Shown: piece after piece, positions 5,153 through 32,984 of the stretch
How the letters are laid out: the number at the start of each line of letters is the position of its first letter
How positions within the stretch are numbered: position 1 is the first letter of the stretch
Assembly: GCA_002269645.1 (NCBI GenBank)
Contig: NIVC01004862.1
Location: 1 to 32,984, forward strand
Source: Macrostomum lignano
Taxonomy: Eukaryota
DNA length: 32,984 nucleotides
Reading direction: 5' to 3'
The notes under the pieces: model-generated
Databases searched by the model: none
The model's input: the letters and a program-made list of their open reading frames with translations, nothing else
What the model was told of the DNA's origin: nothing
Made by a program: the position numbers and the translations under genes

Positions 5153-6838
5153 TTAGGCGATGGTATTTGTCTGAGCTGGAGCAGCCTGTCGGTTCATCTC
5201 TGCCAGCATTTTGATCTCCTGCTCGCAAAATCTCTGACCGAACAGAGTAGCCGAGATGGTACGGGTCACAGCCGCATTGAGCTGAAAGACACCCAGAGCC
5301 AACACTTCGGCCATTTGACGCGAGCGCTTCGGGTCGTAGCAGGCATTGTTGGGCCAGAGAGTGTTCTCCAGGTAGTTGCGGCACAGCGGGTCGCAGCCGG
5401 TCCGAGAGAAGCACTTGTTGGCGGCCATTTCAGAATAAACTCGTTTCGGCATGTCACCGTTTCGCATCGCGGTGATGTTGCAACCCCTCTCGATCTGAGG
5501 AGTGATGCCGCTCTCCACCCAGCACCGGTTGATTCCAGATACAGCGACACAGTGTCCGAGCTTGTCATGGTTAGTTTGGGCTACATTGTTCGGATAGTAG
5601 TATATCAAAGCGAAACACATTTCATCTCTGGCGCCTTCTCCAAGGAAGATGGTAACGTTGCTTTTTAGTGTGCTGTAGTAGCATTCGGTCTTTACTTCGT
5701 CACCTTTCCGGTATTCGATCGGTGGGTCGAAAGTGTGCACCTTCGGGGATTTGAAATCGTACACTTGAAGAGGAGACAGGTCTTTAATCATAGTTCCGTT
5801 TCTCCACAGCGAGATGCGTCCTTTAATGCCATAAGCGTGCATGTGAATGAGTACGGCGGTGATGTAGCGAGTCTCAGTGTGGTACCGGTTCGTGCACACC
5901 GAAGGGCACGTGTGGTTCACGCTGATCAACGGCTGTCGCGGTGGAAGAACAAGATTTATCTCGCCATACATAAGAGTTCCCAAGTCGTATGGTCGAAGGT
6001 TTTGTGTAAAGTAAAGAGCGAAGCCAGAAGCATCTGTGTAGTTAGAAATCCTCATCGGGTTGTTCCAGTGAAGCTGCAAAACTCCATACCGAATACCCTC
6101 ACCGCCAAATCGGAATCCCGCGTTGCTGTTGATGCACTCACCTTCGAGTCCATAGGCCCAGAGGTTCAGCAACTCGGTGCAGTTTCCAATGGGCATGAAA
6201 CACGGTTGTGAATTATTGAAAAGCGTCTCTGCGGGCTTGACATTGCAGACATACATAATCATGTGGTGCATGACGTTCTTGTTGTCAATGATCGGCCTCG
6301 ATCCGATCAGGTGAACCGGAGAGGCAGTGTTGTTCAGCTCGAACGCCTGACAGATGTAGGTTGTCTCTGTGGCGGGCACGGGAGTCGGTTTGAGGGTGAA
6401 GTTTCTCACGAAAACACCGGGCTCTTCGAATGCTGGACAGCTGAAGGCCTTCGGACACACGGTCCACGAGTTCTTGCACGTCGCGGAGTCGAGCGGGCAG
6501 ATGCCAGGGTGGGACAGTCCAGTCGTTCTCGACGGAGCCGCACCGACCTTCCACACGCAGTCGGGGTCTCCGAGCTCTTGGCCGTTCGTGAGTCCGTCGC
6601 CGTCTGAGTCCTTGCGGCACAGGTCGACCGTCCACTGGAGCCCGGCCGCCTTGAAGTCCAAGCCGAAGGGGTTTCTCGCGTTAGCGCCGGCGGGACTCTG
6701 GTGTCCGACTCCGGCCCAGATGGCGCCTGGCTGGCACGGGTTCGGGACGCGATCGCCGTTCGGGATTCGGGACTGGAAAATTTTGTGTGCGTGAGAGCAG
6801 CTGAGCAGTGCGGCCAGAGCCACAGAAAGCAGCAGCAT
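5153..6838 (-). CDS. Gene 1: secreted temptin-domain copper type II ascorbate-dependent monooxygenase (DBH/TBH/MOXD1-like), 561 aa
   Basis: Uninterrupted ORF. Signal peptide MLLLSVALAALLSCSHA; temptin-like IPNGDRVPNPC...GVGH...NPFGLDFKAAGLQWT.DLC.KDSDGDGLTNGQELGDPDCVW...LSHPG; ETTYIC; CuH ligands MHHM and LQLHWNNP; CuM ligands IHMH and DEMC; many N-glycosylation sequons; no C-terminal TM. Confidence 0.95.
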   Translation of the reverse strand: MLLLSVALAALLSCSHAHKIFQSRIPNGDRVPNPCQPGAIWAGVGHQSPAGANARNPFGLDFKAAGLQWTVDLCRKDSDGDGLTNGQELGDPDCVWKVGAAPSRTTGLSHPGICPLDSATCKNSWTVCPKAFSCPAFEEPGVFVRNFTLKPTPVPATETTYICQAFELNNTASPVHLIGSRPIIDNKNVMHHMIMYVCNVKPAETLFNNSQPCFMPIGNCTELLNLWAYGLEGECINSNAGFRFGGEGIRYGVLQLHWNNPMRISNYTDASGFALYFTQNLRPYDLGTLMYGEINLVLPPRQPLISVNHTCPSVCTNRYHTETRYITAVLIHMHAYGIKGRISLWRNGTMIKDLSPLQVYDFKSPKVHTFDPPIEYRKGDEVKTECYYSTLKSNVTIFLGEGARDEMCFALIYYYPNNVAQTNHDKLGHCVAVSGINRCWVESGITPQIERGCNITAMRNGDMPKRVYSEMAANKCFSRTGCDPLCRNYLENTLWPNNACYDPKRSRQMAEVLALGVFQLNAAVTRTISATLFGQRFCEQEIKMLAEMNRQAAPAQTNTIA

Positions 6839-7569
6839 TATGGTATACTAATTCGCTCGTATATATCTGGATATTTTAAAAATGCGTAATGCGTAACTTA
6901 ATAGTATTTAGATGGAGGTCAATGATCTCTAATCTCTCTAAGACAGAAACCAAAAGAAGAATTTCTGTGCGGAAAGAGGGAGGTAGACAGAAACAGCTGT
7001 TTTAATATGGATAATAAGAGGTGGGTAGTCAGCAGTAGTTTGGGCAGTCAGCAAGCATGTTTCAAGTTTGTCCTTCAACCCATTGCCCAGTGTATTGGGT
7101 TTGTATGGGGGTGGAACTGCACCAGGAAGAGCAGTGGTGTAAGAAGAAAGAGATTCACAATTTACTGGCCTCCTAGTAGTCTAACTTAGAGTAATGGCAT
7201 TGCAACGCCTGCGTGAGCCCAGAGCTGCTTTTCTAGCATGCGTTGGGGGGCTGCGGAAGAGTAGGAAACCATTCGGCAGCCGGATAAGCATCGATTTTTT
7301 CTAGTAGACTGGCATAATGCGTGTGACAGATAAACTCATTCAAGTTGGGGAATATGCTTGTGCGCATGCGTGGAACGTGCGTTATGAATTTCGGGCCAAG
7401 AAATTATTTTACCTATTCATTCGGTCCTGCGCCTCTGGATGAATAACTTCAATTAATCTATATTAAAAAAAGAGTTCAGCAAATTTTTGTTGCTCACGTT
7501 GCTCATTCGCGTGTCACATCTTCTTCGTTAGGACCTGCCCGTAGGACCTGGAGCTGACCCTCGACTACG

Positions 7570-7957
7570 ATGTGACCCGGCGACATATCAAAGCTTCGCA
7601 GACTTGGGGTCCTAATGATGACAGGCTCAAGAAGATCTACCAAAAGGAAAAATCGCCAGAATTACCACCAACCATAAAGTTTCGACTCTCGCAGTTACGC
7701 ACGGGACACTGTCGCCTCACTAACTACTGGAGTCAGATAGTGGGGCTGGCACCCCGAGCCTTTCCCCGAATGCGGGAGTACTGAAGACAAAGATCACTGG
7801 TTCCTGTGCCCTAAGTGAGACTGGCTTCGGTGAGCTCTCGATGCGCACTTGCTTGAGGACTTAAGTAATGAGGACTTGGTGTTAAGATTCCTTCGGTCAG
7901 CCAAACCCGGAGTGGCTCTGGTCGGTTACTCGTTCCGACGACACACACACACACACA
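7570..7957 (+). mobile_element. 3' end of a non-LTR retrotransposon (I/Ingi/R1-like ORF2 C-terminus) with (AC)n tail
   Basis: LSQLRTGHCRLTNYW, then in a shifted frame PECGSTEDKDHWFLCP (CCHC knuckle remnant), then LVLRFLRS, ending in an (AC)n run at ~7941-7957. Confidence 0.7.
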
Positions 7958-9120
7958 GTAGCGGCAGCGCCTGTGAAAACAGCAGTGCCAACATCAGCAC
8001 CTACGGCGGCAACAGCAGCAGCGCCAAAAGCGCTACCAGCGACCGGGACCTACACCTGCGAGGTGCGAACCAATGTCGCGCCCTTTAGACGGCGACCGAA
8101 ATTCGCGCCGGCCGCAGACTCATGGATGTCACAATTCTTTGCATCCCAATCGATCTTACCCTCCTGCAAGCTTCACCAAGAGCATCTGTGAAGTGGCGGC
8201 TTCTTAACGTGGCTCGTCTACGAAAACAAACTGCCAGCGGACTGCGCCGCGACGAGCACCCGAATGATGGTGGAATGCCAGCATCACGGCTACCGGACAT
8301 TTGCCCTCCGGCATTTGCCCTCCGGACATTTGCCCTCCGGCATTTCCCCTCCGGACATTTGCCCTCGAGGACATTTGCCCTCGGGGACATTTGCCCTCCG
8401 GACATTTGCCCTCCGGACATTTGCCCTCGGGGACATTTGCCCTCGGGGACATTTCCCCTCCGGACATTTGCCCTCCGGACATTTCCCCTCTGGAAAAGTA
8501 CAGGTAAGGCTGGGGATAGGGTAGGGCGCGGGTATATATTGCTTACTAGAAAAGGATGAGTTGTTGGCTGGAGAAGAACCTGATGGATGCAAGAGGCGGG
8601 AGGATGAGGTTGGTGCTGGAGGAACGACGGGTGGGTACAGGAGGAGGTGAGGTGAGTAATGTGCGAGGGGGTAAATTTGCAGAGGGCAAATGTGCGGAGG
8701 GGAAATGTCCGGAGGGCAAATGTCCGGAGGGCAAATGTCCGGAGGGCAAATGTCCCCGAGGGCAAATGTCCCCGAGGGGAAATGTCCGGAGGGCAAATGT
8801 CCGGAGGGGAAATGTCCCGGAGGGCAAATGTCCGGAGGGCAAACGCCGCCGAGGGGAAGTGCCGGAGGGCAAGTGCCGGAGGGGAAGTGCCGGAGGGCAA
8901 ATGTCCGGAAGCGCAGCATCACACGTGCTGCGGCCTGTCGACACGCTTCAACAAGCTGCTGGCCGTCGTCAACCTCACCTCGCTCAGCCACATCGGCGCT
9001 GAGAGGGCTTGCAACCTTAATTGGCGAGAGGATGGGCCGCTTGACTGCCACCTGGACTGCCTCCGAGGGCTGGCGCACATTTCGTCCCCAGCTGTGGCTC
9101 AGCAGCAACCTGATCTTTGA
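7958..9120 (+). pseudogene. Possible decayed coding sequence disrupted by the foldback insertion; product unknown
   Basis: One frame runs from the P/T/A-rich ORF at 7973 through a single TGA (8189-8191) to the target site. After removing 8288-8922 (insert plus one TSD copy) it continues in frame to TGA at 9118-9120. No family recognised. Confidence 0.3.
8288..8913. mobile_element. Foldback/Mutator-like non-autonomous element whose inverted arms are 15-bp tandem arrays
   Basis: Left arm (CGGACATTTGCCCTC)n at ~8293-8490, right arm the reverse complement at ~8683-8908, with a ~190-bp unique spacer. Perfect 9-bp target duplication CAGCATCAC at 8279-8287 and 8914-8922. Confidence 0.85.
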
Positions 9121-9960: not shown

Positions 9961-11147
9961 CGCTGCATACGGATGCCTCAACTACGCCGGCAAGTGTCCG
10001 CCGGGCACTAGATTTCACCGGTTTCCAGCAGCCAGAGAGCGGTGAGTGGCAGCTCGATAATTCTTAAAAATTATAATAGCGTTTTTACGTTACCACACCC
10101 CTTTTCGTTTTAGATGAAAAGATTGGGCTAAGCGCATCTCCGGAGCTGACCTGCTGGGCAGGAAGAACGAGGCAAAGTAGAAGAATGCGTGCGTCTGCAG
10201 CCAGCACTTCGCTGATGACTGCTCATGACTTTGCGCACGCACCGTTATGAACAAATTAATTACAAGGTTAGCGCAGCAAAGGCTTTCAAAGGCTGTCTTG
10301 AGCTAGACTTTTAAATTCAACTTTGCGTCAAAAAAATGCAGCTACTTATCAGCTTCACAACGTTAGTAGTGCAAGTGCATTTATTTTCGCTTTCATAGAG
10401 AACTGCCGATTCGCCATTCTGTGTCTATTCTGTGGCTTATGGTTCCTCTCAAAAATAGCATACAACACGACTCGCGGTTTAACTGATTGGAGAGCGGGCT
10501 ACTTAATGCTTTGAATACAGCAGTTGCATTACTGGTCAGGGGATTATGCAAACGTTTTAGTGTACGAGTTGTATTGAAAATAGTCCAACAGTAAAATTAA
10601 AAAGTCTGAACTTTTGAGTAGGGATTCTCAGTATGTCTCAAAGTTAATTCACAAAGAGTAATGTTAAAGTTAAATGTAAGTTAACATTAGGTGGCAGAAA
10701 GAAGAAACGGTTTTCTTAAATATAAAAAAGCAAAAGAATGAGAGCTGAAACTAATACAGTGTCGAACTTTTGCTTTTTTGACAAGATCCGAATTTTAATT
10801 TGCGAACCATAATCGTGATTTTTTTAATTTACCTATCATATTTACATGTACAAAAAGTTAGTGGAAAACAGTTTTAAAGAGACTGTTAATGCTTATTAGT
10901 AATTAGGCCAAACTAGCTAGTTCGTAAATAACTTCACATGAGTCGCGGAAGTTTTATGAAAAAAATAAACTTGAAGTTTACGTTTACGTTTTTAGGTTCA
11001 ACAAGTCTGCCCTACCGTAGCTGCCATATAAGTTCATCTATGACTATAGTCATAATAATTGTCATAATAGTTTATTTTTCATGCGTAAAGTGCAGTTCTT
11101 CTCTTACAGGTGGCTTTAATTCTTAATTAGGCTAATGCTTTTTACTC

Positions 11148-11400
11148 GTAGCCTAGATGGGGGATTGAAGCCGGGTGCTTAGAGCGTCGGACTCACGACT
11201 TGAAGGTCGACTTGGAATAATTAGTGTCCTTGAGCAAGACACTTGACTCTGCATTGCCTCAGTTCACTCAGCTGTAAAATGAGTGCCAGAATTAGCTGGG
11301 GTAATTGAGGCTGTGTGTGGTGACTCCCCAGACCTTGGACTGAACAGCCGTACGCAGCCTACAGATAGCTGCAGTAGCTGCGGCTGAGCTGTCGGTGTTA
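11148..11400 (+). mobile_element. CORE-type tRNA-derived SINE, degenerate copy lacking the B box
   Basis: MIR-like CORE GTGTCCTTGAGCAAGACACT...TGCCTCAGTTCACTCAGCTGTAAAATGAG. Colinear with the copy at 14821-15149 but the GGTTCGATTCC segment is deleted. Confidence 0.8.
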
Positions 11401-12252
11401 AATATTGAACTTTGCCGTAGTCTTCTAGGACTCTCACTGTGGCTCTATCTATAACTAACTTTTATTTCCAGTATTAGAGCCATATAGCGGAGGCAACGGA
11501 TTCAACGGAGGTAACTCATTGTTGTTTACCATCGTAATTGTGCTAATCGTTTATTTTTTTATGATGCATATCGGTGAGCTATACTTTCCATTTTTCCATG
11601 CCGGCCAAAAGCATGTTTGGTATTTTTTTACTTTTGCAGAACTCGGGATCCAGGGTTGAAATCAGTAAAATCTTGTGATAGGATAAAGCTCCTAAATCTA
11701 CCTACCAGGCTAACAGGCTATTTGCAGAAAAGGATCCCAGGGAGTCACGTGGGTCAAATGACTCACGAGATAAAGATTAAGGTCAAGATGACTACATGTA
11801 CCCCGAAAAAAAATCTTGACCGCGGCGCTAAAAACGCATCAAGCATAGAGGACATGGCGATGGCAAATAAATGTGCAGTTCACCGATGTCCCCCATAAGT
11901 AACTGTCGTGCTCCGGCCTCCTTCCTAGAGGGAGTCAGTCGCTCAGTGTTTTCAAGTGTCTTCAGGATTGCACAATGAAACTTCAACAAGTCAAAGCTTA
12001 ATTTACTGCGAGTAGTGTTGCAAAAGTCTATAAAAATATTTGTCTCTTTCATCACTAGTATGTTCCACATACTGAAAACATTGATTTCTAGTGTCTTGTA
12101 AGGGACTACTTTTAATTTTGACTGCTTGCAAATTATCATAGAAAATCTGTTAGTAATTTTCGTAGACCAGGCTGAAATACATTTGTCTTGATAAAAGAAC
12201 AAATACTCTAAACTACGTAGTTAAAATGTAATGCTCAATCATAAAACTAATA

Positions 12253-12258
12253 TTTATT
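12253..12258 (-). promoter_or_regulatory. Putative polyadenylation signal of gene 2
   Basis: AATAAA on the minus strand ~190 nt past the stop, in the block shared with gene 1. Confidence 0.5.
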
Positions 12259-12444
12259 GAAACATTAATTATTTCCAAACAAATCCACACAGTCTAGCAA
12301 TTTAAAAATTAAAGCCAGTCAAAAAATTTGTGAACCGAAACCAAAAAAGTAACTCCTGGTTTAACTGCACGGCCTAATGACTTGATATAAGTTTTGAAAT
12401 TACTGTCAAAACTAGCTCGTATTCGCATGGCAGGTGTCCAGAGG

Positions 12445-14121
12445 TTAGGCGATGGTATTTGTCTGAGCTGGAGCAGCCTGTCGGTCCATCTCTGCCACCT
12501 CCTGCTCGCAAAATCTCTGACCGAACAGAGTAGCCGAGATGGCCTGAGTCACTGCCGCATTGAGCTGAAAGACACCCAGAGCCAACACTTCGGCCATTTG
12601 ACGCGAACGCTTCGGGTCGTAGCAGGCATTGTTGGGCCAGAGAGTGTTCTCCAGGTAGTTGCGGCACAGCGGGTCGCAGCCGGTCCGAGAGAAGCACTTG
12701 TTGGCGGCCATTTCAGAATAAACTCGTTTCGGCATGTCACCGTTTCGCATCGCGGTGATGTTGCAACCGCTCTCAACTTGGGGAGTGATGCCGCTCTCCA
12801 CCCAGCACTGGTTGATTCCAGATACTACGACACAGTGTCCGAGCTTGTCATGGTTACTTTGGGCTACATTGTTCGGATAGTAGTATACAAATGCGAAGCA
12901 CATTTCATCTCTGGTGCCTTCGCCATAGAAGATTGAAACGTTGGTTTTTAGTGTGCTGTAATAGCATTCGGTCTTTACTTCGTCACCTTTCCGGTATTCG
13001 ATCGGTGGGTCGAAAGCATGAATCTCCGGTGAGTTGTAATCGTACACTTGAAGAGGAGACAGGTCTTTAATCATAGTTCCGTTTCTCCACAACGAGATGC
13101 GTCCTTTAATGCCATAAGCGTGCATGTGGATGAATGCTGCGGTGATGTAGCGAGTCTCAGTGTGGTACCGGTTCGTGCACACCGAAGGGCACGTGTGGTT
13201 TACGCTGATTAACGGCTGTCGCGGTGGAAGAACGAGATTTATCTCGCCATACATAAGAGTTCCCATGTCGTATGGTCGAAGGTTTTGTGCAAAGTAAAGA
13301 GCAAAGCCAGATGCATCGGTGTAGCCTGAATGTTTCATCGGGTTGTTCCAGTGAAGCTGCAAAACTCCGTACCGAAGGCCATCACCGCCGATTCGGAACC
13401 CCGCGTTGCTGTTGATGCACTCACCTTCAAGTCCGTAGGCCCAGACGTTCATCAACTCGGTGCAGTTTTCAATGAGCATTAAACACGGTTGTGGACTGTT
13501 GAAAAGTGTCTCTGCGGGTTTTGCAGTGCAGGCATACATAATCATGTGGTGCATGACGTTCTTGTTGTCGATGATCGGCCTCGATCCGATCAGGTGAACC
13601 GGAGAGGCAGTGTTGTTCAACTCGAACGCCTGACAGATGTAGGTGGTCTCAGTGGCGGGCACGGCAGTCGGTTTAAGGGTGAAGTTCCTGACGGTCACGT
13701 TGACACTGTCAAGTGCTGGACAGCTGAAGGCCTTCGGACACACGGTCCACGAGTTCTTGCACGTCGCGGAGTCGAGCGGGCAGATGCCAGGGTGGGACAG
13801 TCCAGTCGTTCGCGCTGGAGCCGCACCGACCTTCCACACGCAGTCGGGGTCTCCGAGCTCTTGGCCGTTTTTGAGTCCGTCGCCGTCCGAGTCCTTGCGG
13901 CACAGGTCGATCGTCCACTGGAGCCCGGCCGCCTTGAAGTCCAAGCCGAAGGGGTTTCTCGCATTGGCGCCGGCGGGGCTTTCGTGTCCGACTCCGGCCC
14001 AGATGGCGCCTGGCTGGCACGGGTTCGGGACGCGGTCGCCGTTCGGGATTCGGGACTGGAAAATTTTGTGCGCGTGAGAGCAGCTGAGCAGTGCAGCCAG
14101 GGCCACAGGAAGCAGCAGCAT
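12445..14121 (-). CDS. Gene 2: secreted temptin-domain copper type II monooxygenase, 558 aa, tandem paralog of gene 1
   Basis: Uninterrupted ORF with the same architecture and all Cu ligands (MHHM, LQLHWNNP, IHMH, DEMC). Ends QTNTIA* like gene 1; no TM. Confidence 0.95.
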   Translation of the reverse strand: MLLLPVALAALLSCSHAHKIFQSRIPNGDRVPNPCQPGAIWAGVGHESPAGANARNPFGLDFKAAGLQWTIDLCRKDSDGDGLKNGQELGDPDCVWKVGAAPARTTGLSHPGICPLDSATCKNSWTVCPKAFSCPALDSVNVTVRNFTLKPTAVPATETTYICQAFELNNTASPVHLIGSRPIIDNKNVMHHMIMYACTAKPAETLFNSPQPCLMLIENCTELMNVWAYGLEGECINSNAGFRIGGDGLRYGVLQLHWNNPMKHSGYTDASGFALYFAQNLRPYDMGTLMYGEINLVLPPRQPLISVNHTCPSVCTNRYHTETRYITAAFIHMHAYGIKGRISLWRNGTMIKDLSPLQVYDYNSPEIHAFDPPIEYRKGDEVKTECYYSTLKTNVSIFYGEGTRDEMCFAFVYYYPNNVAQSNHDKLGHCVVVSGINQCWVESGITPQVESGCNITAMRNGDMPKRVYSEMAANKCFSRTGCDPLCRNYLENTLWPNNACYDPKRSRQMAEVLALGVFQLNAAVTQAISATLFGQRFCEQEVAEMDRQAAPAQTNTIA

Positions 14122-14769
14122 TATAATACACTAATTATATTGGTGGTCCTTTTAAGTCTAATAATTCGTAAGGCGTAAGTGTCTTTAAATGGAGGCGATC
14201 GCTTGAGTCTAACTGCTTTCGCTTGAGAAGAAATTAGGGCGCAATGACGAGCAAGCCACGTGGAGACCATAGTTGATTTAAAGGATGCCTACTTTACTCT
14301 AGGCTTGCTGCGTGGGCCTCAGTGTCAAGTGTGTTAACCCCACCCCACTTGCGCCGTCTTCTCCCTCACGCCCTCCCCCGCCGCACGACGGGGGCTTTCA
14401 AGTTGACTTCCCCTTCTCATTGCTGCTTCGTGCTCGCTGCCAGCCGCCGCTTTTTCTTTCTGTCTCTGCTGGTGGGGTTGCGGGTTAATATACAATTAAA
14501 AATTAAGTAGCAACGTGCATTATACATGTAGGTGTCGATCGTCGGTAAGAAGTCGATTATTGGTTCTCCTTATTGCATTTTCTATGTCAATTTCATAAGC
14601 GTTACTAGATTCCACTAATTTGTTTTCTTCTTAATTTAAAACTTTTCCTTACTGTGGATGGAGTGTGCCTTTGTAAATATAATATTTGAATATTACACAA
14701 AGCCGCCTTGCGTTTTCTTCAATTCAAACCATGCTAAATTCAATGAAATGAAAGAACGATCAAATAAGG

Positions 14770-14796
14770 CTAACCCTAACCCTAATAACCCTAACC
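14770..14796. repeat. Short interstitial (TTAGGG)n-type repeat
   Basis: CTAACCCTAACCCTAATAACCCTAACC. Confidence 0.6.
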
Positions 14797-14820
14797 ACTG
14801 ACGCCTCTACCTTGAATTTT

Positions 14821-15149: not shown

Positions 15150-15239
15150 ATTATATACTAGACAAGTAGAAAGCATATCTTTATAGATCTCAATTTTACA
15201 GAGAGAGTCTTGATTGACTTGAATTTGATGGAGATAATA

Positions 15240-15570: not shown

Positions 15571-15699
15571 TGCCACGGCATCACTTAACGTCAGTGGCAA
15601 GCCAAAGCGGCTGGAATGAGACACCCCAGATACATCTGAGGTAGCAGTTTCAGATGCGGTAGTCCCTGACGCCTTTTACAAGATCGAAGAAAAACCATG

Positions 15700-22917: not shown

Positions 22918-22964
22918 ATTTTAAATAACTTTTCTGGGAGATATAATACTCTACAGAAAATGTC

Positions 22965-23647
22965 TTGAGCTTTCATTCTCAAGGAAGCCATGTTGGCGTG
23001 AAAAGCACCGTAAGTCTTTTCACGGCAAGGTACTATGCCGATATACCTGTAACACCGATTGCCAGAGCAAAACACCGAATCCCATTGAAGTTCCCAGGAA
23101 TGCGAGCGCCTCTTCGGGTTTTTGTGCACGGACTGCATCACAATGCCGACTACCACACCAAACGGTTCCAAGTATACCCTGACTGTATGCTGCAAGTTTA
23201 CAAAGTTTGCCATTTTTCGGGCGTTGCCGAACATCAAAGCGCTGACTATCGCAGCCGAGTTAAAGAGTATTTTTGCGCTTTTCGGCTGACTAATGGTGAT
23301 TCTCAGTGATCAGGGACGCGAGTGTTGCAACTTTGTCTTGGACGCCCTGCTGCAGTCCGGAGAAACACAAAAAGAGTGACCAGCGCTTACCAACCACAGG
23401 TAACCTTAGCAGTAATCTTTTATGCTTCTAATATTCTGTAGAGCATCATGTCGTTAAGTACGAGCAGATCACTAACTTTCCCCAGACAAACGGTGAAACT
23501 CAGTGCCTCAACCAAACGTGCATTAATCTACTGAGACAGCGGTGTGATTCTGAGGAACCAACTAACTCGGATTCCGTGCTGAATGATTTTCAACTCGCCT
23601 ACAACAGCCGCCGACATTCGGTGACGGGCTTCTCGCTGGGCAGGTAA
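22965..23647 (+). mobile_element. Degenerate Gypsy-type integrase
   Basis: HSQGSHVGVKSTVSLFTARYY (HHCC remnant); GSKYTLTVCCKFTKF; TIAAELKSIFALFG*LMVILSDQGRE; FPQTNGETQCLNQTCINLLR; LAYNSRRHSVTGFS. Contains stops and frameshifts. Confidence 0.85.
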
Positions 23648-23901
23648 ATAATACGAAAGTAATTATACAGAGAATCATGTATATTTTATAGTGCATACTT
23701 CTATACTGTAGCAGACACTGTTAGATCATATGCCTTCATTTCGGCGACCCGAAACTGACAGGAGCCCCGGAGATTTTAAACGGTAACACCGGTACGAAAG
23801 GCGTGCTGGGAATCGCTGTCAACTCGCATGAAATCAGATACCATCGGGTCCAGGAGATTTGAAAGGCTTGAAGGTTCTGAACGCACTGGCGATTAAATCT
23901 T

Positions 23902-23963
23902 CAGTGACAATGTACGTGACAATCAGTGACAATCAGTGTCATCAGTGACAATGACAATGTACG
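23902..23963. repeat. Short degenerate tandem repeat (CAGTGACAAT-like unit)
   Basis: cagtgacaatgtacgtgacaatcagtgacaatcagtgtcatcagtgacaatgacaatgtacg. Confidence 0.55.
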
Positions 23964-24372
23964 CTGCTAGGGTGGCTCCATCCATCGAATGGCATCAACA
24001 GATTCAGCATCAACAGTGACAAGCTTTTTTGATCAAGTAGTTATTCGATGCTAGTAGTACTCGTATCTTTTCATTTTCAATGTTTTTGCGGTATATTTAA
24101 TCAGTAAGACAAAAACTATTTTGCAAATTAAAATTAAAAATATACGAAAAATTATAATGTTCCAGATTAATTTTCATTCAATAAAAACCGTTTACACATA
24201 TACGCTTGTAAAAATTGTGTTGTGAAAAATCGATAGTTTTTAAACAGCTCATTTAAAAAAAGATTTTCGAGACCTAAATTTCTTAAAAATAAGCAAACTC
24301 TGATCAATCGTCCACCGTGTCACAGCTGGTCTTTTTGATTAAAGTTAGCTGAATCCAACCAGCGATTCTTCA

Positions 24373-26297
24373 TCAGCCACTCGCTTCATTGTCGTACACT
24401 TTATAGACGCTCGACTTGTCCGGAGCGCCCTGCTGTCCGCTGCTGAGCCCGGCAGCCGAGCTCGCACCCTTCAACTTGATTGACAGAAAGATTAGCAGAG
24501 CCAGAATCAGAATGAACCCCAGGCAGCTGCACACAACGATGATGATCAGCAGGTGCTCCGAGCTCAGGCCGCCCTTCTGCGACGTTGGAGTAGCGGGGGC
24601 CTAGCGGTGGTTGTTGTACGATCTGGAGCAGCCGGTCGGTCCATCTCTGCCAGCATTTTGATCTCCTGCTCGCAAAATCGCTGACCGAACAGAGTAGACG
24701 ATATGGCCAGAGTAACAGCTGAATTGAGCTGAAATAAACCCAGAGCCAACACTTCGGCCATTTGACGCGAACGCTTCGGGTCGTAGCAGGCATTGTTGGG
24801 CCAGAGAGTGTTCTCCAGGTAGTTGCGGCACAGCGGGTCGCAGCCCGTTCGAGAGAAGCACTTGTTGGCGGCCATTTCAGAATAAACTCGGTTTGGGATT
24901 TCACCGTTTCGCATCGCGGTGATGTTGCAACCCCTCTCGATTTGAGGAGTGATGCGGCTCCGCAACCAACACGAATTGATGCCCGACACACCGATGCAGC
25001 GTCCGAGCTTATCGTCGGTGCTCACGGAGACATCGTTAGGATAATAATATAGAAATGAAAGGCACATCTCGTCGCTAGTACCTTCGCCAAAGAAGATAGT
25101 AACGTTGGTTTTTTGTGTGTTAAAATAACATTCGGTCTTTACTTCGTCACCTTTCCGGTATTCGATCGGTGGGTCGAAAGCATGAATCTCCGGTGAGTTG
25201 TAATCGTACACTTGAAGAGGAGACAGGTCTTTAATCATAGTTCCGTTTCTCCACAACGAGATGCGTCCTTTAATGCCATAGGTGTGCATGTGGATAGTTG
25301 CCCCGGTGATGTAGCGAGTCTCATTGTGGTACCGGTTCGTGCACACCGAAGGGCAGGTGTGGTTCACGCTGATCAACGGCTGTCGCGGTGGGAGAACGAG
25401 ATTTCCCTCGCCATACATCACAGTTCCCAAGTCGTATGGTCGCAGGTTTTGTGTAAAGTAAAGAGCAAAGCCAGAAGCGTCGGTGTAGCCTGAATGCCTC
25501 GCCGGGTTGTTCCAGTGAAGCTGCAAAACTCCGTACCGAAAGCCATCACCGCCGATTCGGAACCCCGCGTTGCTGTTGAAGCACTCACCTTTGACTCCGT
25601 AACCCCAGAGGTTCAACATCTCGGTGCAGTTTCCAAGAGCCATGAAACACTGTTTTGGATTATCGAACAGCGTCTGTTCTGGCTTGACACTGCAGGCGTA
25701 CATAATCATGTGGTGCATGACGTTCTTGTTGTCGATGATCGGCCTCGATCCGATCAGGTGAACCGGAGAGGCTGTGTTGTTCAGCTCGAACGCCTGACAG
25801 ATGTAGGTGGTCTCATTGGCGGGCACGGGAGTCGGTTTGAGGGTGAGGTTTCTCATGGTCACGTTGGCACCGTCCAGTGCTGGACAGCTGAAGGCCTTCG
25901 GACACACGGTCCACGAGTTCTTGCACGTCGCGGAGTCGAGCGGGCAGATGCCAGGGTGGGACAGTCCAGTCGTTCGCGCTGGAGCCGCACCGACCTTCCA
26001 CACGCAGTCGGGGTCTCCGAGCTCTTGGCCGTTCGTGAGTCCGTCGCCGTCCGAGTCCTTGCGGCACAGGTCGACCGTCCACTGGAGCCCGGCCGCCTTG
26101 AAGTCCATGCCGAATGGGTTTCTGGCGTTAGCGCCGGCGGGACTCTGGTGTCCGACTCCGGCCCAGATGGCGCCTGGCTGGCACGGGTTCGGGACGCGGT
26201 CGCCGTTCGGGATTCGGGACTGGAACGACTTGTGCGCGTGAGAGCAGCTGAGCAGTGCAGCCAGAGCCACAGAAAGCAGCAGCATAGTCGTTTTCAT
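24373..26297 (-). CDS. Gene 3: temptin-domain copper type II monooxygenase, probably type I membrane-anchored (~641 aa if one base is restored; 577 aa as written)
   Basis: Same architecture and Cu ligands as genes 1 and 2. Adding one C to the C5 run at 24595-24599 extends the frame through PATPTSQKGGLSSEHLLIIIVVCSCLGFILILALLIFLSIKLKG...VYKVYDNEASG to tandem TGA TGA (24375-24370). Confidence 0.88.
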
Positions 26298-26362
26298 TGT
26301 TATTTTTCAGCAGCTTGAGGTTATTGCAGTTGAAAACTTGCATCGGCTGTCTGCTCTGAGAG

Positions 26363-26370
26363 TTTTTATA
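26363..26370 (-). promoter_or_regulatory. Putative TATA box of gene 3
   Basis: TATAAAAA on the minus strand ~65 nt upstream of the ATG, similar to the spacing in gene 4. CCAAT and TGACGC motifs lie just upstream. Confidence 0.5.
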
Positions 26371-28033
26371 CTTTTATTGAGAGTTCATCGAATGCTAAAA
26401 ATAAATAGATGACGCGCTGGACCAATGAAAACGCCCAGAAAGTTTATGCTGTCACTTAGAGTATGGTTTTTTCTAGAATTCATCATCTACGAGTAATTGG
26501 TGTGTCTCGTATTCTCAGACCTCGTTCTTTCCAGAAGTGTTTTTTATGCCGTTGTTATTGAGGCGTCACAAAGAGTACACTCTAAATAGACACTCGAAAT
26601 CGTGAGAAAGTTTTTGCAAGAATATTAACGAGAATAGTATAGACTGTCATAATTTTAAACCTTGTTGTTGGCATACCAGACAGTTCCAGTGATTATATAC
26701 TTATTTAGCGTTTGGTAGAGAGCATCGTTGGTAGAAAAGTTCAGGTGTATTATATAAATTAATCATAGTAAAGCGTGTGGTAATCTTAATAACCTACACG
26801 TCTCACCGAATTCGTGTAGGCTAATAATTTGTGAATCATTTGATGCAGGTTGTAGGGGTCGAAAAAATCGCCATTGAATAGACTTGCTTACACTGATCTA
26901 TGTAAATCTTGCAGCGCTGAGCTGCATTGTGCATGAAATTTCATTTTAACCGAAAGCTAGGAAATTTAATCGCACGGCTTTCATTGTCTATTCTGTTTGC
27001 ATCAAATGGAGCACGGCTTATAATTAAACTGATGGGCAAGAAAATGGAAAAGAGAAAAGAAAATAACCAAATTTTCGACGGGCAAAGATAACAAGAGCAG
27101 GGCGTTACGCTTGAATAAGTACTTGGGGCTGCGCTGGAGTAGCCAGTGCTTGTGAAGTGGACAAAGTTTCAAATGACGGTTATTGTTTTTTGAGCCTAAG
27201 CTAGGAAACGTAGAGCCTACGTAGCTGGACAACAATATGCAACTGACAGTTTTCTATCGTCCACTCCGCATTTTATGAGCTTGCTAGCTAAACTTAGAAT
27301 CGGAAAAATTAGTGCAGAAAGTACTAGTACTAGTGTGATAAATAATAATATAGACGATTTTTTAAAAAAATGGTCAACTTTTAATCAGCTGAGTTATAGG
27401 ATGCCACGGCTTAAGGAGTTGCTGGAATGAAAAGGATCAAGGGGAGTTGCGATTGCTAGCTCGTAGAAGGGGTCTTTAACAAGAAAGCTTGATACGATAT
27501 ATCAAGGTTAATAAACTCCTGCTTTACACCTCCCCGATGAGGGACCAATCTGCTAGTTTCCTATAAAACCACAAGCAGTACTATGAGGAAAATCGTAATT
27601 GATAGAGTTTAGTAATTTGCTTTTAAATTTCTATCATTTTTTCTTGCAGAAACTTTCCTTCGAAGTGACAACATTTTGGATAATGGAATATTAAGTATGG
27701 ATACTATTAAACTGGCTTGAACATCAGAACTTTTTAAATAACAATGCAAATTGTAGCAACAAATCGCAACTGTCGCACAGTTAAATCATTAAACGCGTAT
27801 CGCCATCGATCTCTAATGGTGCTTTTGATGCCTTTGCGTAAGTGTAATCAGCAGAAGATTCCTATTTTCTAAACTGTCCACAAAGCAAAGTTGACGCAAG
27901 CGCCAAGAGCAGACAAGAACAGACAAAGCTATAGTCACTTTTTGGACTCATTATACGAGCGTATGCATAGTCAGAAAAAACTTCACTTTAGCGTCTTCTT
28001 AGAAAACAACTTGTTTACTTTATTTAGTGTCCA

Positions 28034-29700
28034 TTATATAAAAAATAGCCAATATTGCTGGGTACTCTTGAAGTGAAGCGAAAGTTCCGTTAGCAAGAGG
28101 TTGGGAGAAATCAGCCGACACGCGCGTGATGCGTGAACAAGCATATAGCCTTGGCAGCAACTCCCCCAGATGAAAAAGACCTGCAAGCCTAAAAATAGCC
28201 CAGATGATCGACGAGCGAGAAGCCCAGCCATGCGACCCTCGCATGATGCATGAACCACCTCTGGCCGACACTGCCTATTAAGCCTCCAAGTCATTGTCTT
28301 TCTCGTCTTCGCAGGAATGCTGTCACTCAAATGACTCGGAAAGCCGGGAAAAATGGAGGGCACTGCTTCTGGATAGAGTCGCTTCCGTTCCAATGGCCGA
28401 AATACGACTTACTTTGACTTAGCTGCAGGGCTGTCCCGGAGGGGACACTTGACACAGCGGGAAGGCGCGGGCGCCCATTCCTCTAATCCCTGAACGGCCG
28501 ACGCGTCGCTATTGACGGAGGGTTGGCGCCGCCCAGGGAATCCCCCAGTGTCGCCAGCAGCTATAGTGCTCTCTGGAAAGGAGAGTTCAGCCCTGCGGGT
28601 GGCCCGAAGGTAGCGCATGAGCTGGTTAAAGTTTTCGGGTTTGCACGCTTCAGTAATAGATGTGTGTGGCCCGAGGTAAGTGAGTCTGGCCCACGTAAAG
28701 GCGGGACAGATGCTGACGAAATGCTCAGCGGTTTCGTCACCTGAGTTGCAGAAACTGCAGATGGCGTTGGTGGCGTTGCCCTGCAAGTACTGGTGCCTAG
28801 AGAAGCAGCCGTGACCTGAGAGGGTCATGGTGGCAGCCCGGATGTCTCTACGCGAGAGGCGCAAGAGGAGCTTCCGGAGCTGGTGAGAGGGCTGAGGGAC
28901 AGCGCCTCTGGATTCCCTGCAGGTGGTGCAGTTCGCCCAAGTCGAGCGGTGCTGAGTCCTGATCCACGCTTTGATGCGCGAGTCGATGACACAGCCGGGA
29001 ATCGGGACAAGAGGTTCGGGACCGAGAGAGGAGCCGGAGGCACCAACTTTTGCAAGGGTGTCGGCCAACTTATTCCCTCGGATCCCCACATGCCCCGGAA
29101 CCCTCATTTTGTTAGTGGGTGATTTTGTAATTTTGTAATTTTGTTAATTTTGTTGGTGGAAGTCAGTAAGAGGGAAATTTTGTTATTTTGGGTAATTTTG
29201 TTGGTGGAACCCAACATGTTGAGGAGTCTGATACAATCGAGGACTGTAGCAGAATTGGTGCAGCAGCCACTGATGGCGTGCAAGGCAGCTTGGCTGTCCG
29301 AATGGAAAATGATGTTCTTACCAGTAACGCCAGTGGCGAGAAGCTCTGCAGTGCAGGAGCTGATGGCCAGAACTTCATTTTGGAAGACACTGGAGTTGAC
29401 CCCAGTGTATTGAGCGTGGGTAGCGATGACCCTCCCGTCCAGAAAGATTCCAACACCAAATCCGGTGTGAAATCCTTCTAGAGATTGCACAAAACACTCT
29501 GGAATAAAGTGCTCAGAGCACACCTTGGAATGCTTTGAAGGTTTGAAATCTTTGCGGCGGCGAGCAGCTATCCATTTTTTCTTAACATCATTGTCCTTCG
29601 GGAAGGAGTGAAATGAGATTGCTGACGAACTTGAGGCCCTGTTGCTACAAACAAATGCTGTGCAGAAGTGACTGTTTCCTGGCTTTTTAGCTTGCTGCAT
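28034..29700 (-). pseudogene. THAP zinc-finger ORF (gene or P/Harbinger-type transposon 5' part) split by a LINE insertion
   Basis: N-part CTAFVCSNR...FHSFP...W...VCSEHF (29700-29469) and C-part RKRLYPEAVPSIFP (28398-28034) rejoin in frame (597 nt, 198 aa) when the insert is removed. Confidence 0.85.
28404..29468 (-). mobile_element. 5'-truncated R1/LOA-type LINE, copy 2 (RNase H C-part, CCHC knuckle, 3' UTR)
   Basis: SVFQNEVLAI, IFHSDSQAAL, VPGHVGIRGNKLADTLAK, LSGHGCFSRH...CSFCNSGDETAEHFVSICP, and an AAGT-like 3' tail. Flanked by GAAAT at 28399-28403 and 29469-29473. Confidence 0.9.
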
Positions 29701-29835
29701 CGTATGCTGATTGAATTATTTTTCGCTACACATTCATCAGTTTTCTTAATTAATCAACCATATATTTTTTTTCATTTTTACTTAGCAGTCAGTACAACCA
29801 TATGTGCGCTTGATGAGATTTTAGACAGATTTTAG

Positions 29836-30133
29836 ACAGTGGGATAGTGGGGTGCCCCGGTCCCCACGCAGTTCACTAAAATGAGTGGCTGCGGCGTTAA
29901 AATGGTGCCTGCAGCGCTAAAATGAGTTTCTGCGGTGCTAAAATGAGTGTCTGCGGTGCTAAAATGAGTGTCTGCGGTGCTAAAATGAGTGTCTGCGGTG
30001 CTAAAATGAGTGTCTGCGGTGCTAAAATGAGTGTCTGCGGTGCTAAAATGAGTGTCTGCGGTGCTAAAATGAGTGCCTGCGGCGCTAAAATGGTAGAAGT
30101 TCGTGGGGACCAGGGCACCGCACTATCTCACTG
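29836..30133. mobile_element. MITE with CAGTG termini (Tc1/mariner-pogo-like) enclosing a 21-bp minisatellite
   Basis: ~32-bp terminal inverted repeats CAGTG(G/A)GATAGTG(G/C)GGTGCCC(C/T)GGTCCCCACG with 3 mismatches. The canonical TA target duplication is not intact. Confidence 0.7.
29875..30093. repeat. 21-bp tandem repeat, about 10-11 units
   Basis: Unit GCTAAAATGAGTGTCTGCGGT. Central units are identical and terminal units are diverged. Confidence 0.95.
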
Positions 30134-31062
30134 TTCCATTATCGATCGGGGGGAGGAAAACTGAGGGTGCCATTTCCTCTATGACAAACAAGACATGCAC
30201 CCCTTAGTGTGGGGAATACCGGCATGCGCAGTCTAGTTATATTACTTGGTCTGTGGTACAGTGTGTTAGCTTATAAAATATACTGATTGCAGAGGAACGA
30301 TCCTCGCCAGAAGTTTGAGAATGTGACTCCAGAGATCACACAGAGAAAGTACCATCGGGTCCATTGTTCGTTGTCTTTCTGAACTGTTGGCAGAAGGAAA
30401 CATTTATGGGGAAAGCCATGATAATAAAACGTTTCACTCAGGAGTTTGGACTTGTGTAACACTAAGCATTAGGACATTTGCGTTGACGGTCGAAATATGT
30501 CTCAATTTTTACTTCTAGCGTTTTGGCTTATAGATACGATCTACCGATTGCCTTCCCGGAATGAAAGAATGCCAGCTAATGCAATAGAAAATGTGAGGAA
30601 TACTCTTATCTGTGGTCGCAGGTATTTAAGCATTTCGGCGCCACTACACGAGTCGAGTTTTACACGATCTGAACTTTATGTTCTGGGCACCTTAGGAGCT
30701 ACGAGTACTTTTACGGGTTAAAGTCTGTATATTTTAGCTCGTAAAAAGAACTCGTCTAAAACTTTATCATCTTAAGTTTGCCTCTGACTTCATTGAAAAC
30801 ACTTTAAATAAACATGTATGTAGATTCTTCGAGGTCTGTCGTGTACTTGGTAACCAAGCAAACAATGAGCAATATTTATCCAAGTCATTTGCTGCCCTTT
30901 TGGAAACCAAGCAGCTCACGACATTGGCAAACAGTGCGGTAGGCAGAACACGGCCAGTCGGGGCATGGATTCAAATGCAAATAAGAATTACTAAGTTAAT
31001 CATTCACCATAAACAAACATAACCTGAGAACCTGAGAACGCAGAAATGACGCACAAGGCGCC

Positions 31063-31070
31063 TATATAAA
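31063..31070 (+). promoter_or_regulatory. Putative TATA box of gene 4
   Basis: TATATAAA ~70 nt upstream of ATG 31139, with TGACGCA just upstream. Confidence 0.55.
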
Positions 31071-31138
31071 ATAAAAGATGCGTGGAAAAGAATGAACGAC
31101 AGAGCCGCAAATCTGCAGCTTTGAACCCGACCCGAATC

Positions 31139-32984
31139 ATGAAACTTGGAATCAGCTTAATAGCGACTGCAGCCGTTGTGCTGCAGACTGTACACGGCTA
31201 CTCAAGTTTCAAGTCGAGGATACCCAACGGAGATCGCGTCCCGAACCCGTGCCAGGTGGGCACCATCTGGGCCGGAGTGGGGCACGAGAGTGCGGTTGGA
31301 GCCGACACTCGCAACAAGTTCGGTTTAGACTTCAAGGCGGCCGGGCTCCAGTGGACGGTCGACCTGTGCCGCAAGGACTCGGACGGCGACGGACTCACGA
31401 ACGGCCAAGAGCTCGGAGACCCCGACTGCGTGTGGAAGGTCGGAGCCACTCCGGCGCGTACGACTGGACTGTCCCACCCTGGAATTTGCGAGTTCGGCTC
31501 CACAAAATGCAGCAACGCGTGGAACGTGTGCCCAAAAGCATTCAGCTGTCCAGCCATGAATGACCCCAGTGTGACCGTGAGAAACTTCACCATCAACAAG
31601 AACACCCCGGTTCCAGCGAAGGAAACCACGTATGTCTGTCAGGCGTTCGAGCTGAACAACACCGCCACGCCTGTTCACCTGATCGGATCAAAGCCAATCA
31701 TTGACAACAAGAACGTCATGCACCACATGATCATGTACGCCTGCTCTTCGAAGCCGAATCAGACGTTTTTCGACGCCCCGCAGGAGTGCTTTATGGCCCG
31801 CTCGGACTGCAATGAGATAGTCAATCTGTGGGCATTCGGGCTCGAGGGCGAGTGCTATAACAACAACACCGGCTATCGCATCGGAGGCGAGGGCTATCGC
31901 TACGCAATGCTGGAGCTCCACTGGAACAATCCGGCTAAGCTCAGTACATATACAGACTCATCTGGCTTGGCGCTCTACTTCACCCCAACCTGAGAAAATA
32001 CGACCAGGGCACTGCAATGTACGGCGAAGGCAATCTCGTGCTTCCGCCGCGTCAGCCAGTGGTTAATTTTAACCACACTTGCCCGTCGGTGTGCACGGAG
32101 AAGTACCACACGGAGACGCGCTACATCACCGGAGCCGGCATCCACATGCACGGCTACGGAGTGCAGGGCCGCATCTCGCTATGGCGAAATGGAACTCTCG
32201 TCAAGGATTTGCATCCGCTGCAGGCCTACGATTACAACTCGCCTAAAATGAACATGTTCGATCCGCCAATCGAATACCGCAGAGGTGACGAAGTTAAAAC
32301 TGAATGCTACTTCAGCACTCTAAAGTCCAATAAAACAATTTACTTCGGCGAAGGAACTAGTGACGAAATGTGCCTGTCGTTTCTGTCCTATTATCCCAAC
32401 AATGTCAGCAAGCCGAATTCTGAAAAGCTGGGCAGCTGCATCGCCGTCTCCGGAATCAACATGTGCTGGGTGCAGAGCGGCATCGAGCCTCACATAGAGC
32501 GGGAATGCAACATCACAGACATGCGAAACGGCAACCTCACTGAACAGGTATCAGCCGAAATGACAGCCAATGGATGCTTCTCCAAGACCGGCTGCAATCC
32601 AAAATGCCGTGACTATCTCAACAACACCCTGTGGCCGTCGAACGCCTGCTACGATCCGAAGCGAGCGCTTCAGATGACCGAGACAATGGCCACGGGATAT
32701 CTGATAAATCAGTCACGCAAGCCGACCTTTATTAAGACACTATACGGTCAGAGCTTCTGCAACAGGAGGTTGCCATGCTGTCGACGCTAGACCAGAAAGC
32801 TGCCACAATTTCGGCGTCTACAACCCGACTACAAACCAGGTGTTGGGTTCGAGTTACACTGGATTGAAGTCCGAGCACCTGCTTATCATTATTATTGTTT
32901 GCAGCTGCCTCGGCTTATCATTCATAATCATAGCTATTCTGGGTGTAGCGCTAGCAAGCTAGGAGGCGACGGCTTCCCGAAGCC
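31139..32984 (+). CDS. Gene 4: divergent temptin-domain copper type II monooxygenase with C-terminal TM. Broken as written by 3-4 single-base deletions (assembly error or pseudogene) and probably runs off the window.
   Basis: Signal peptide MKLGISLIATAAVVLQTVHG; temptin domain; MHHM, LELHWNNP, IHMH, DEMC. One-base shifts at ~31987, ~32762 and ~32825 restore FTPNLRKYDQGTAMYGE, CxQEVAML and TTPTTNQ...KSEHLLIIIIVCSCLGLSFIIIAILGVALA. Confidence 0.85.

Follow-up and report, generated by a model that had tools for sequence, protein, structure and literature searches.

The window analysed here is the entire contig NIVC01004862.1 of the free-living flatworm Macrostomum lignano (assembly GCA_002269645.1; 32,984 bp), and it carries four paralogous genes, c1 to c4, whose products join a temptin domain to a two-copper monooxygenase core. 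The reading that we favour, and consider probable, is that these are monooxygenases of the DBH/PHM superfamily in which temptin has replaced the DOMON domain, that they were duplicated from an intronless copy, that their substrate is something other than a glycine-extended peptide, and that temptin occupies a DOMON-like niche. The genes are real and are new members of a family described in 2009; the architecture itself is not new. What appears to be new, from sequence comparison, is the fusion of temptin to cytochrome b561, to ferric reductase and, in diatoms, to monooxygenase plus b561, as well as a temptin domain without a detectable relative of solved structure. The four copies are as follows.

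c1: positions 5153 to 6838, minus strand; intact intronless open reading frame (ORF) of 561 amino acids (aa), no transmembrane segment.
Parts of c1, minus strand: signal peptide, about 6788-6838; temptin, 6434-6787; CuH domain, about 5984-6421; CuM domain, about 5579-5983; helical tail with eight cysteines, about 5204-5578.
c2: positions 12445 to 14121, minus strand; intact intronless ORF of 558 aa with c1-like architecture and no transmembrane segment; protein 90.7% identical to c1.
c3: positions 24564 to 26297, minus strand; ORF of 577 aa as assembled, with c1-like architecture; an annotated 577-aa gene in GCA_002269645.1.
c4: positions 31139 to 32984 (contig end), plus strand; the same gene as P0004 (BOX15_Mlig028174g1), 650 aa, a predicted type I membrane protein.

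All four copies match Temptin_C (E 7e-39 to 1e-37), Cu2_monooxygen (E 1e-22 to 8e-28) and Cu2_monoox_C (E 7e-18 to 4e-19) in Pfam, far beyond its cut-offs, while DOMON (PF03351) gave no Pfam match at E ≤ 0.01 in any of the four or in the 120 relatives listed by our family search, Temptin_C standing in its place. Their N-termini are hydrophobic and, read from the sequence, carry a small-residue cleavage motif (..LLSCSHA before the cut, HK.. after it), and each of the tail cysteines (430, 439, 453, 476, 482, 486, 500 and 538) is at least 90% conserved among 113 homologs. Together with the copper ligands described below, these features bear out the layout that the first-pass annotation had proposed for four paralogs (signal peptide, temptin, complete two-copper core and eight-cysteine tail), and also its view of a locally expanded family with temptin in the DOMON position. 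As it had described, three genes are in tandem and one is divergent: c1-c3 lie on the minus strand and c4 is head-to-head with c3. The start of c4 is ATG 31139 rather than GTG 31082, and P0004 is 100% identical to it over residues 1-283. All four loci of the supposed four-gene cluster were found, but the cluster is larger, since a fifth paralog, P0002 (605 aa, with a transmembrane anchor), lies on the overlapping contig NIVC01003975.1, 1.4-3.2 kb to the left of window position 1 (10001-11818 of the retrieved stretch). M. lignano has at least eight family copies (c1, c2, c3, c4/P0004, P0001, P0002, P0006 and P0009). The c1 gene is unannotated on NIVC01004862.1 and no recorded gene has exactly its product; in the c1 region of NIVC01003975.1 the sole gene call is a 136-aa Temptin_C gene. 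The AlphaFold2 (AF2) model of full-length c1 (predicted local distance difference test, pLDDT, 92.8; predicted template modelling score, pTM, 0.87) shows a single integrated body. By prediction the products reach the lumen or the extracellular space, some of them anchored and the others secreted.

Platyhelminthes belong to the Spiralia/Lophotrochozoa. A 'temptin/mono-oxygenase hybrid gene' was described in Pomatoceros, Aplysia and Lottia and called a lophotrochozoan synapomorphy (Takahashi et al. 2009, PMC2762978). The window copies have the arrangement that defines the hybrid family in that paper, with temptin N-terminal to both monooxygenase domains in one polypeptide, and like the hybrid genes of Pomatoceros lamarckii (GQ381308), Aplysia californica (AAY42041) and Lottia they encode temptin, then PF01082 and PF03712. 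Our family search gave 185 matches at E ≤ 1e-5, and all of the 120 listed have Temptin_C and Cu2_monooxygen (119 also Cu2_monoox_C), confirming the earlier suspicion that the fusion might already be present in lophotrochozoan databases. Mollusc, brachiopod and annelid members share 34-47% identity and the eight tail cysteines with the window copies, and tandem arrays occur in a snail too. The core group in Macrostomum has no introns, in contrast to a snail homolog with a span of 19.6 kb. The Macrostomum members also end in a transmembrane helix of strong hydrophobicity and a tail rich in tyrosine (c1 and c2 having secondarily lost the anchor), whereas most mollusc members end soon after the eighth cysteine, with a hydrophobic end that is weak at most. 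The confinement of the fusion to Lophotrochozoa, as stated in 2009, no longer holds, because diatoms carry proteins with temptin, monooxygenase and b561. The public names of family members (TBH-like, DBH-like, MOXD1-like, PAM-like, temptin and, in UniRef, 'DOMON domain-containing protein' for P0001, P0002, P0004, P0009 and P0051) are misleading, as the window copies have neither a Pfam DOMON match nor the substrate-binding residues of PHM.

The six copper ligands of the catalytic core are, in c1 numbering, HH191/192 and H257 at CuH and H332, H334 and M407 at CuM. The ligand pattern HHHHHM is found in c1, c2, c3 and P0004 (c4) when they are aligned to human DBH and rat PHM, and the ligands are conserved in at least 93% (146-151) of 157 aligned cores. 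The only solved relatives retrieved by sequence search were DBH (E 1.7e-27) and PHM (E 7.5e-17), and a Foldseek search with the c1 model likewise gave human DBH (4zel, E 2e-26) and 1phm (E 6e-20), both aligned over only about 300 of the 561 residues. The window copies share with the DBH/TBH/MOXD1 enzymes (human DBH, 4ZEL) the two beta-sandwich core domains and the same CuH HH..H and CuM HxH..M ligands, DBH being the best match in both sequence and fold; both are lumenal or extracellular (by prediction for the window copies), N-glycosylated and disulfide-rich. In DBH, too, the core lies between an additional N-terminal domain, which has an acidic site for metal binding, and a C-terminal extension made of helices (PMC4846438). 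Unlike DBH, the window copies carry temptin rather than DOMON at the N-terminus, are multi-copy and are predicted type I membrane or secreted proteins (DBH has a type II signal anchor), and the DBH Tyr four residues past the CuM Met is Leu or Phe in them. No resemblance of their tail to the DBH dimerisation domain could be detected, and the tail has no sequence relative in the PDB, where there were only chance prion matches at E ~1. A DBH-like dimerisation tail was rejected on this basis and because the 4zel alignment covers about 300 columns of the 561-residue model, which is about the size of the catalytic core.

With PHM (of PAM; 1PHM, 1OPM) the window copies share the core fold and copper ligands, but they resemble it less closely in sequence than they do DBH, lack a PAL domain and have other residues in place of those that bind the carboxylate. 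The residues of PHM that bind the peptidyl-glycine carboxylate, which we take to be R240, N316 and Y318 (rat PHM numbering), have as their equivalents in c1-c4 L/F/T/G, F/F/L/L and L/F/F/F, respectively, and glycine-extended peptides are unlikely substrates because these residues have been replaced by hydrophobic ones. The Arg240 equivalent, two residues before the first His of HxH (residue 330 in c1, 330 in c2 and 334 in c3), is L, W, F, I, T or A across the family, and its variation across the four copies may be a hint of substrate-pocket divergence. From the ligands and from PHM/DBH chemistry, CuH would take electrons from ascorbate or from a cytochrome-b561-linked supply, while CuM would activate O2 and hydroxylate a C-H bond. 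The substrate would not be a glycine-extended peptide, a hydrophobic or aromatic compound being the best guess. The roles that the first-pass annotation had listed as possible, in pheromone, toxin or mucus chemistry, are conjectural.

Residues 18-120 of c1 are homologous to full mature temptin (Temptin_C, PF24784, E 2e-38), and the predicted mature residue 1 of the window copies aligns with residue 1 of mature Aplysia temptin. In the numbering of the latter, which we take to be that of Cummins et al. 2007, the landmark residues are Cys18, Trp52, Cys57, Cys77 and Trp79. The window domain shares its Cys, Trp and DSDGDG positions with the temptins of Aplysia and Biomphalaria. It differs from free temptin of ~100 aa in that it sits in an enzyme of 558-650 aa and has extra cysteines (97, 104, 111 and 117) that tie into the linker. 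IPNG, VGH29, F41, W52, C57, the acidic loop D60-D74, C77, W79 and H93-P-G are conserved in stand-alone, monooxygenase-fused and b561-fused temptins, and the loop, D-S-D-x-D-G...N-G-x-E-L-G-D-P, is invariant and gives weak matches to TSP3_bac. The AF2 model of the isolated domain has a pLDDT of 93.3. Against the PDB, the domain gave no phmmer match and no Foldseek match at E ≤ 10, a search that is weak on small irregular domains. An EGF-like or other known fold was considered for temptin, and the fibrillin-EGF model of the literature was left unsupported by these zero Foldseek matches. A histidine brace at the mature N-terminus was also rejected, residue 1 being His in c1-c3 and Tyr in most relatives. 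As we picture it, temptin would be a module stabilised by its Ca2+ loop and bearing two invariant histidines (H29 and H93), and its co-occurrence with other domains suggests that it may fill the DOMON niche beside CuH, in metal handling, electron relay or docking. More speculatively, it could assist copper retention or electron entry, or tether the enzyme or its substrate.

Searched exhaustively with HMMER, the 118-aa temptin domain gave 2712 cluster representatives at E ≤ 1e-3. Partner counts come from a Pfam scan of 136 of the best of these 2712 (the 150 sequences most similar to the query), which is a biased sample. The partners were Cu2_monooxygen (58), cytochrome b561 (9), DUF2427 (5) and ferric reductase with an NAD-binding domain (1); lectin, Ig, dermatopontin and PAE domains occurred once each, and DOMON did not occur. 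Five proteins combine temptin, both monooxygenase domains and b561 in one chain (P0209, P0212, P0218, P0229 and P0237): two are from named diatoms (Chaetoceros tenuissimus GFH49968.1 and Entomoneis paludosa), one has an MMETSP marine-protist member and two are from environmental or sequencing-run assemblies. Four further proteins combine temptin with b561 only (P0180, P0196, P0205 and P0236), and P0221 combines it with ferric reductase. In secretory vesicles DBH and PAM receive electrons across the membrane from cytochrome b561, and DOMON is the usual partner domain of b561 and of DBH-type cores. Like the DOMON-cytochrome b561 proteins (CYBDOM/FRRS1-type), the temptin proteins place a small extracellular domain N-terminal to b561 or to a copper monooxygenase, and temptin is also found with both. 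Unlike in those proteins, temptin has no sequence or fold relation to DOMON and the window genes have no b561, the analogy being one of co-occurrence. The fusion partners suggest a DOMON-like redox or metal role. The high conservation of the domain within the protein agrees with this, as do, circumstantially, the expression reports from copper-exposed mussel larvae and bivalve mantle cited below. A broader proposal, which we put forward tentatively and do not regard as likely, is that temptin is an extracellular metal-handling or electron-relay module that, independently of DOMON, came to occupy the same niche and partners monooxygenases, b561 and ferric reductases across eukaryotes. If so, diatoms would encode the whole chain from b561 through temptin to CuH/CuM in one polypeptide, the Macrostomum cluster would represent the repeated conversion of a membrane-anchored oxidase to secreted forms, and the free temptins would act as released modules for redox or metal chemistry, not purely as signalling ligands.

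Several points weigh against the favoured reading and its extension to a redox role. The diatom cores are not robustly grouped with the animal temptin-fused cores, the split of DBH and PHM from the rest being found in only 24/100 bootstraps, and the diatom fusions may be independent of the animal ones. When monooxygenases are set aside, the redox partners in the biased sample (5) barely exceed the non-redox ones (4: lectin, Ig, dermatopontin and PAE), and a redox or metal role for temptin would be deduced from domain co-occurrence and two conserved histidines. Aplysia temptin is reportedly a Ca2+-binding, attractin-binding protein and not a redox protein. Within the cluster, c1 and c2 are unannotated and have no identical product on record, and they could be silent. 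The frameshifts of c3 and c4 may be real, that of c3 being found in two contigs. Searches by locus tag and by keyword turned up no published data on the expression or function of the M. lignano genes.

In an alternative that is possible, although we would not wager on it, temptin is only a Ca2+-stabilised module for structure or docking, which anchors the enzyme on matrix, on mucus or on a protein substrate and takes no part in copper or electron handling. The invariant loop resembles the Ca2+ sites of thrombospondin type-3 repeats, temptin has been described as a Ca2+-binding EGF-like motif with DSDXD treated as the Ca2+ site (PMC10075465), and the four non-redox partners would suit docking; the lack of a conserved His at the first mature residue, which makes a histidine brace unlikely, agrees with it as well. 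What a docking module leaves unexplained is the presence of H29 and H93 in every class of temptin, the repeated fusion to membrane modules of the cytochrome b561 or ferric reductase type, and the exact replacement of DOMON in a DBH-like layout.

The favoured reading also has to be weighed against ordinary duplicated tyramine or dopamine beta-hydroxylases making octopamine or noradrenaline in neurons. Many members bear TBH-like or DBH-like names, human DBH is the best solved relative, and a lumenal tethered enzyme would suit a secretory vesicle. On the other hand, no DOMON was found and the DBH alignment is limited to the ~300 columns given above. In neighbour-joining (NJ) trees the temptin-fused cores of animals lie apart from human DBH, which was the one DOMON-type sequence in the comparison (the outgroups were human DBH and rat PHM, with no spiralian TBH or MOXD1); c1 is 30% identical to DBH and 44% identical to a family member from Haliotis. 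Copy number is also high for such enzymes, with the eight or more genes of M. lignano, 12-13 temptin-like genes in Biomphalaria and tandem arrays in a snail. Finally, reported expression, although the evidence is circumstantial throughout, is tied to mantle, infection or copper response and not to neurons: temptin and DBH-like transcripts rise together in mussel larvae under copper exposure (PMC8696127), bivalve mantle shows differential expression of temptin genes and of genes with Cu2_monooxygen domains (PMC11464482), and in Biomphalaria temptin-like and DBH-like transcripts respond to schistosome infection. We therefore think it improbable that the window genes are neuronal hydroxylases of this kind.

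More improbable still, in our judgement, is that the products are pheromone or adhesion precursors from which temptin is released or on which it is displayed for partner binding, the monooxygenase being a catalytically irrelevant scaffold. Aplysia and Biomphalaria secrete stand-alone temptins as attractants, the window domain aligns residue for residue with mature Aplysia temptin (in the numbering assumed above), and temptin is the most conserved region of the protein, with nonsynonymous divergence (dN) of 0.016-0.13. A scaffold would not be expected, however, to keep all six copper ligands in every copy and in at least 93% of the aligned cores, nor to show in its CuH and CuM domains ratios of dN to synonymous divergence (dS) of 0.07-0.42 in all comparisons with appreciable divergence. 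Furthermore, the interdomain linker is rich in cysteine and has no dibasic cleavage site, and the AF2 model is of an integrated body.

Divergence among the copies, from pairwise Nei-Gojobori estimates, is that of true paralogs under purifying selection, the unannotated c1 and c2 included. Between c1 and c2, dN is 0.049, dS is 0.172 and dN/dS is 0.28; dS is 0.23-0.27 between c1 or c2 and c3, 0.11 between c3 and the P0001 gene and 1.3-1.5 between c4 and the others. Pairwise dN/dS is 0.15-0.41 overall and below 0.6 in each of the four domains. The copies are not decaying pseudogenes, nor are they collapsed haplotypes, because dS is 0.17-1.5; mis-assembly of haplotypes, which the first-pass annotation had named as a way in which its reading could fail, is contradicted by the same values. 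Its description of the family as diversifying was not upheld, purifying selection being seen in every pairwise comparison, and pairwise dN/dS lends no support to gene-wide positive selection. It is very unlikely that the cluster represents an artefact of assembly or a group of pseudogenes in decay, on a redundant haplotig of an error-prone long-read assembly. Such a reading might be drawn from a window that duplicates parts of three other contigs, from indel noise (c4 is broken here and intact elsewhere, c1 is intact here and a 136-aa fragment call on NIVC01003975.1) and from the missing annotation of c1 and c2 and the frameshift of c3 in two contigs. Against it stand these dS and dN/dS values, the intact 1.7-kb ORFs of c1 and c2, the differing flanks of the copies and the same gene order on independent contigs.

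Two further observations concern exchange between copies. The dS of c4 against c1-c3 is only 0.44-0.54 in the temptin-coding parts (approximately 6434-6787, 13720-14070, 25890-26240 and 31190-31545) and 1.5-2.7 elsewhere in the gene, which points to gene conversion or to constraint on synonymous sites in that region. The segment AFEEPGVFVRNFTLKPTPVPATETTY is common to c1 and P0002 and absent from c2, which suggests mosaicism.

As for the origin of the cluster, c1-c3 together with P0001-P0006 are monophyletic in 100/100 bootstraps (NJ tree, catalytic cores), and the genes of P0001, P0002, P0004 and P0006 have a single exon. The divergent Macrostomum paralog P0009 has introns, because its span of 3094 nt for 621 aa does not translate colinearly, and the 19.6-kb homolog in the snail Bulinus has a tandem paralog upstream. 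We infer an intronless, probably retroposed ancestor, followed by duplication at the DNA level, part tandem and part dispersed. The cluster is an ordinary lineage-specific expansion. The unit shared by c1 and c2 is the following.

c1 duplication unit: positions 4613 to 6853, paired with 11917-14136 (c2) at 86.6% identity; it takes in the coding sequence and, beyond it, some 540 bp on the 3' side but no more than about 15 bp before the ATG.

The copies differ in their membrane anchors and in the state of their reading frames. Anchors are present in all five annotated M. lignano paralogs that were checked (P0001, P0002, P0004, P0006 and P0009) and absent from c1 and c2, whose ORFs stop at TAA where the other copies run on into a Thr/Pro linker and the anchor. 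The early stop of c3 is due to a C-run (about 24598-24606) that is one base shorter than in the P0001 gene, which gives a 12-residue out-of-frame end. In the shifted frame the c3 tail is 97% identical to P0001 residues 567-638, with a Kyte-Doolittle maximum of 3.31. The features concerned are these.

c3 frameshift with preserved transmembrane helix and Tyr-rich cytoplasmic tail: positions 24373 to 24606, minus strand; shifted frame 24376-24597 (222 nt), stop 24373-24375.
c1 3' flank: positions 4952 to 5152, minus strand; out-of-frame anchor-coding remnant 'LTSEH' (5142-5156), then AATAAA at 4952-4957, ~200 nt downstream of the c1 stop.

The c3 frameshift is common to the window contig and NIVC01000757.1, and it may be real or a systematic error. 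In c4 there are five indel sites in the window, namely 1-nt deletions at 31982, 32759, 32824 and 32949 and three inserted bases at 32917-32921, and the contig end cuts off a further 106 nt of coding sequence, so that the last 35 codons are missing. On two sister contigs c4 is intact (1953-nt ORF, 650 aa) with zero substitutions in the gene, and around c4 the window and NIVC01000757.1 differ by zero substitutions over 11.8 kb. Consensus error is the simplest reading of the c4 breaks because the indels crowd into the last 1 kb of the contig. Short introns were rejected as the cause of the c4 split and of the early stop of c3, since these are 1-nt indels with no GT..AG. The absence of introns from the coding sequences, claimed earlier for all four genes, is correct for c1 and c2 as they stand; c3 is frameshifted and c4 is split by indels, neither by introns. 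Hidden anchor exons for c1 and c2 were sought by permissive tblastn with three tail queries, which returned only c3, c4 and the 5-residue out-of-frame remnant past the c1 stop.

PAM exists both as a type I membrane protein, whose cytosolic tail serves in sorting, and as soluble isoforms. The ancestral product of the Macrostomum genes probably had type I membrane topology and a cytoplasmic tail rich in tyrosine, and the tyrosine motifs of the tails (YKVY, YLYNEY and YNAY) suggest trafficking signals like those of PAM. Since c1 and c2 share their 3' flank, the anchor was probably lost before the c1-c2 duplication, and in c3 it may have been lost recently, through the frameshift. The locus would make both anchored forms (c4/P0004, and P0002 just outside the window) and freely secreted forms (c1, c2, and c3 as assembled), in keeping with the mix of secreted and cell-surface enzymes that had been predicted.

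The window is a small redundant contig that holds most of a cluster of at least five paralogs, in the order P0002(+), c1(-), c2(-), c3(-), c4(+). Positions 14564-32984 match the record at 100%, and the best protein matches of the first ORF are Macrostomum lignano proteins. NIVC01003975.1 overlaps window positions 1-7900 at 99.6% identity, NIVC01000757.1 (449 kb) overlaps 15065-32984 (99.8% from 17295 on and ~97% over 15065-17298, with a break between), and NIVC01000416.1 overlaps 25734-32984; single-base indels make up most of the differences between overlapping contigs. On NIVC01003975.1, P0002 is on the plus strand, facing c1 in convergent orientation, and on its far side is a PHO4 phosphate-transporter gene. 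No other host genes were found in the window, which outside the cluster holds only transposon fragments (THAP, and a QRICH1/DUF3504-like ORF that scores under the Pfam cut-off) and simple repeats. The clearest transposon feature is between the head-to-head c3 and c4.

Transposon-derived ORFs: positions 28037 to 29715, minus strand; THAP domain (E 4e-13) and retroelement-like C-terminal region.

A fragment related to these ORFs, 75-92% identical, is found between c2 and c3 at 15752-16366, and there is further transposon debris at 15060-15491 and 16652-17140. A 15-bp tandem repeat, CCGGACATTTGCCCT, forms two mutually inverted arrays at 8293-8494 (~13 copies) and 8682-8909 (~15 copies), which generate long spurious ORFs on both strands; NIVC01003975.1 stops just before them (window ~7900). 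A 21-bp tandem repeat (29876-30092; 10.4 copies, 93% matches) lies inside the 4.8-kb head-to-head spacer between c3 and c4. The region at about 20000-22000 is of low complexity with strand asymmetry (GC skew 0.24, AT skew 0.27) and has Pro/Ser/Leu-rich pseudo-ORFs on the minus strand.

The family to which these genes belong is an orphan enzyme family that is numerous in databases, with 185 matches in our search and Cu2_monooxygen in 58 of the 136 temptin representatives scanned. The TBH and DBH names that pipelines assign to its members are liable to misdirect studies of how molluscs and flatworms make octopamine and noradrenaline. The co-occurrence of temptin with b561 and ferric reductase offers a concrete biochemical hypothesis and would revise the 2009 view of the fusion as a lophotrochozoan invention. 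M. lignano is tractable by RNA interference, in situ hybridisation and transgenesis, and its compact intronless cluster, predicted to yield anchored as well as secreted enzymes, offers a practical way into the function of the family.

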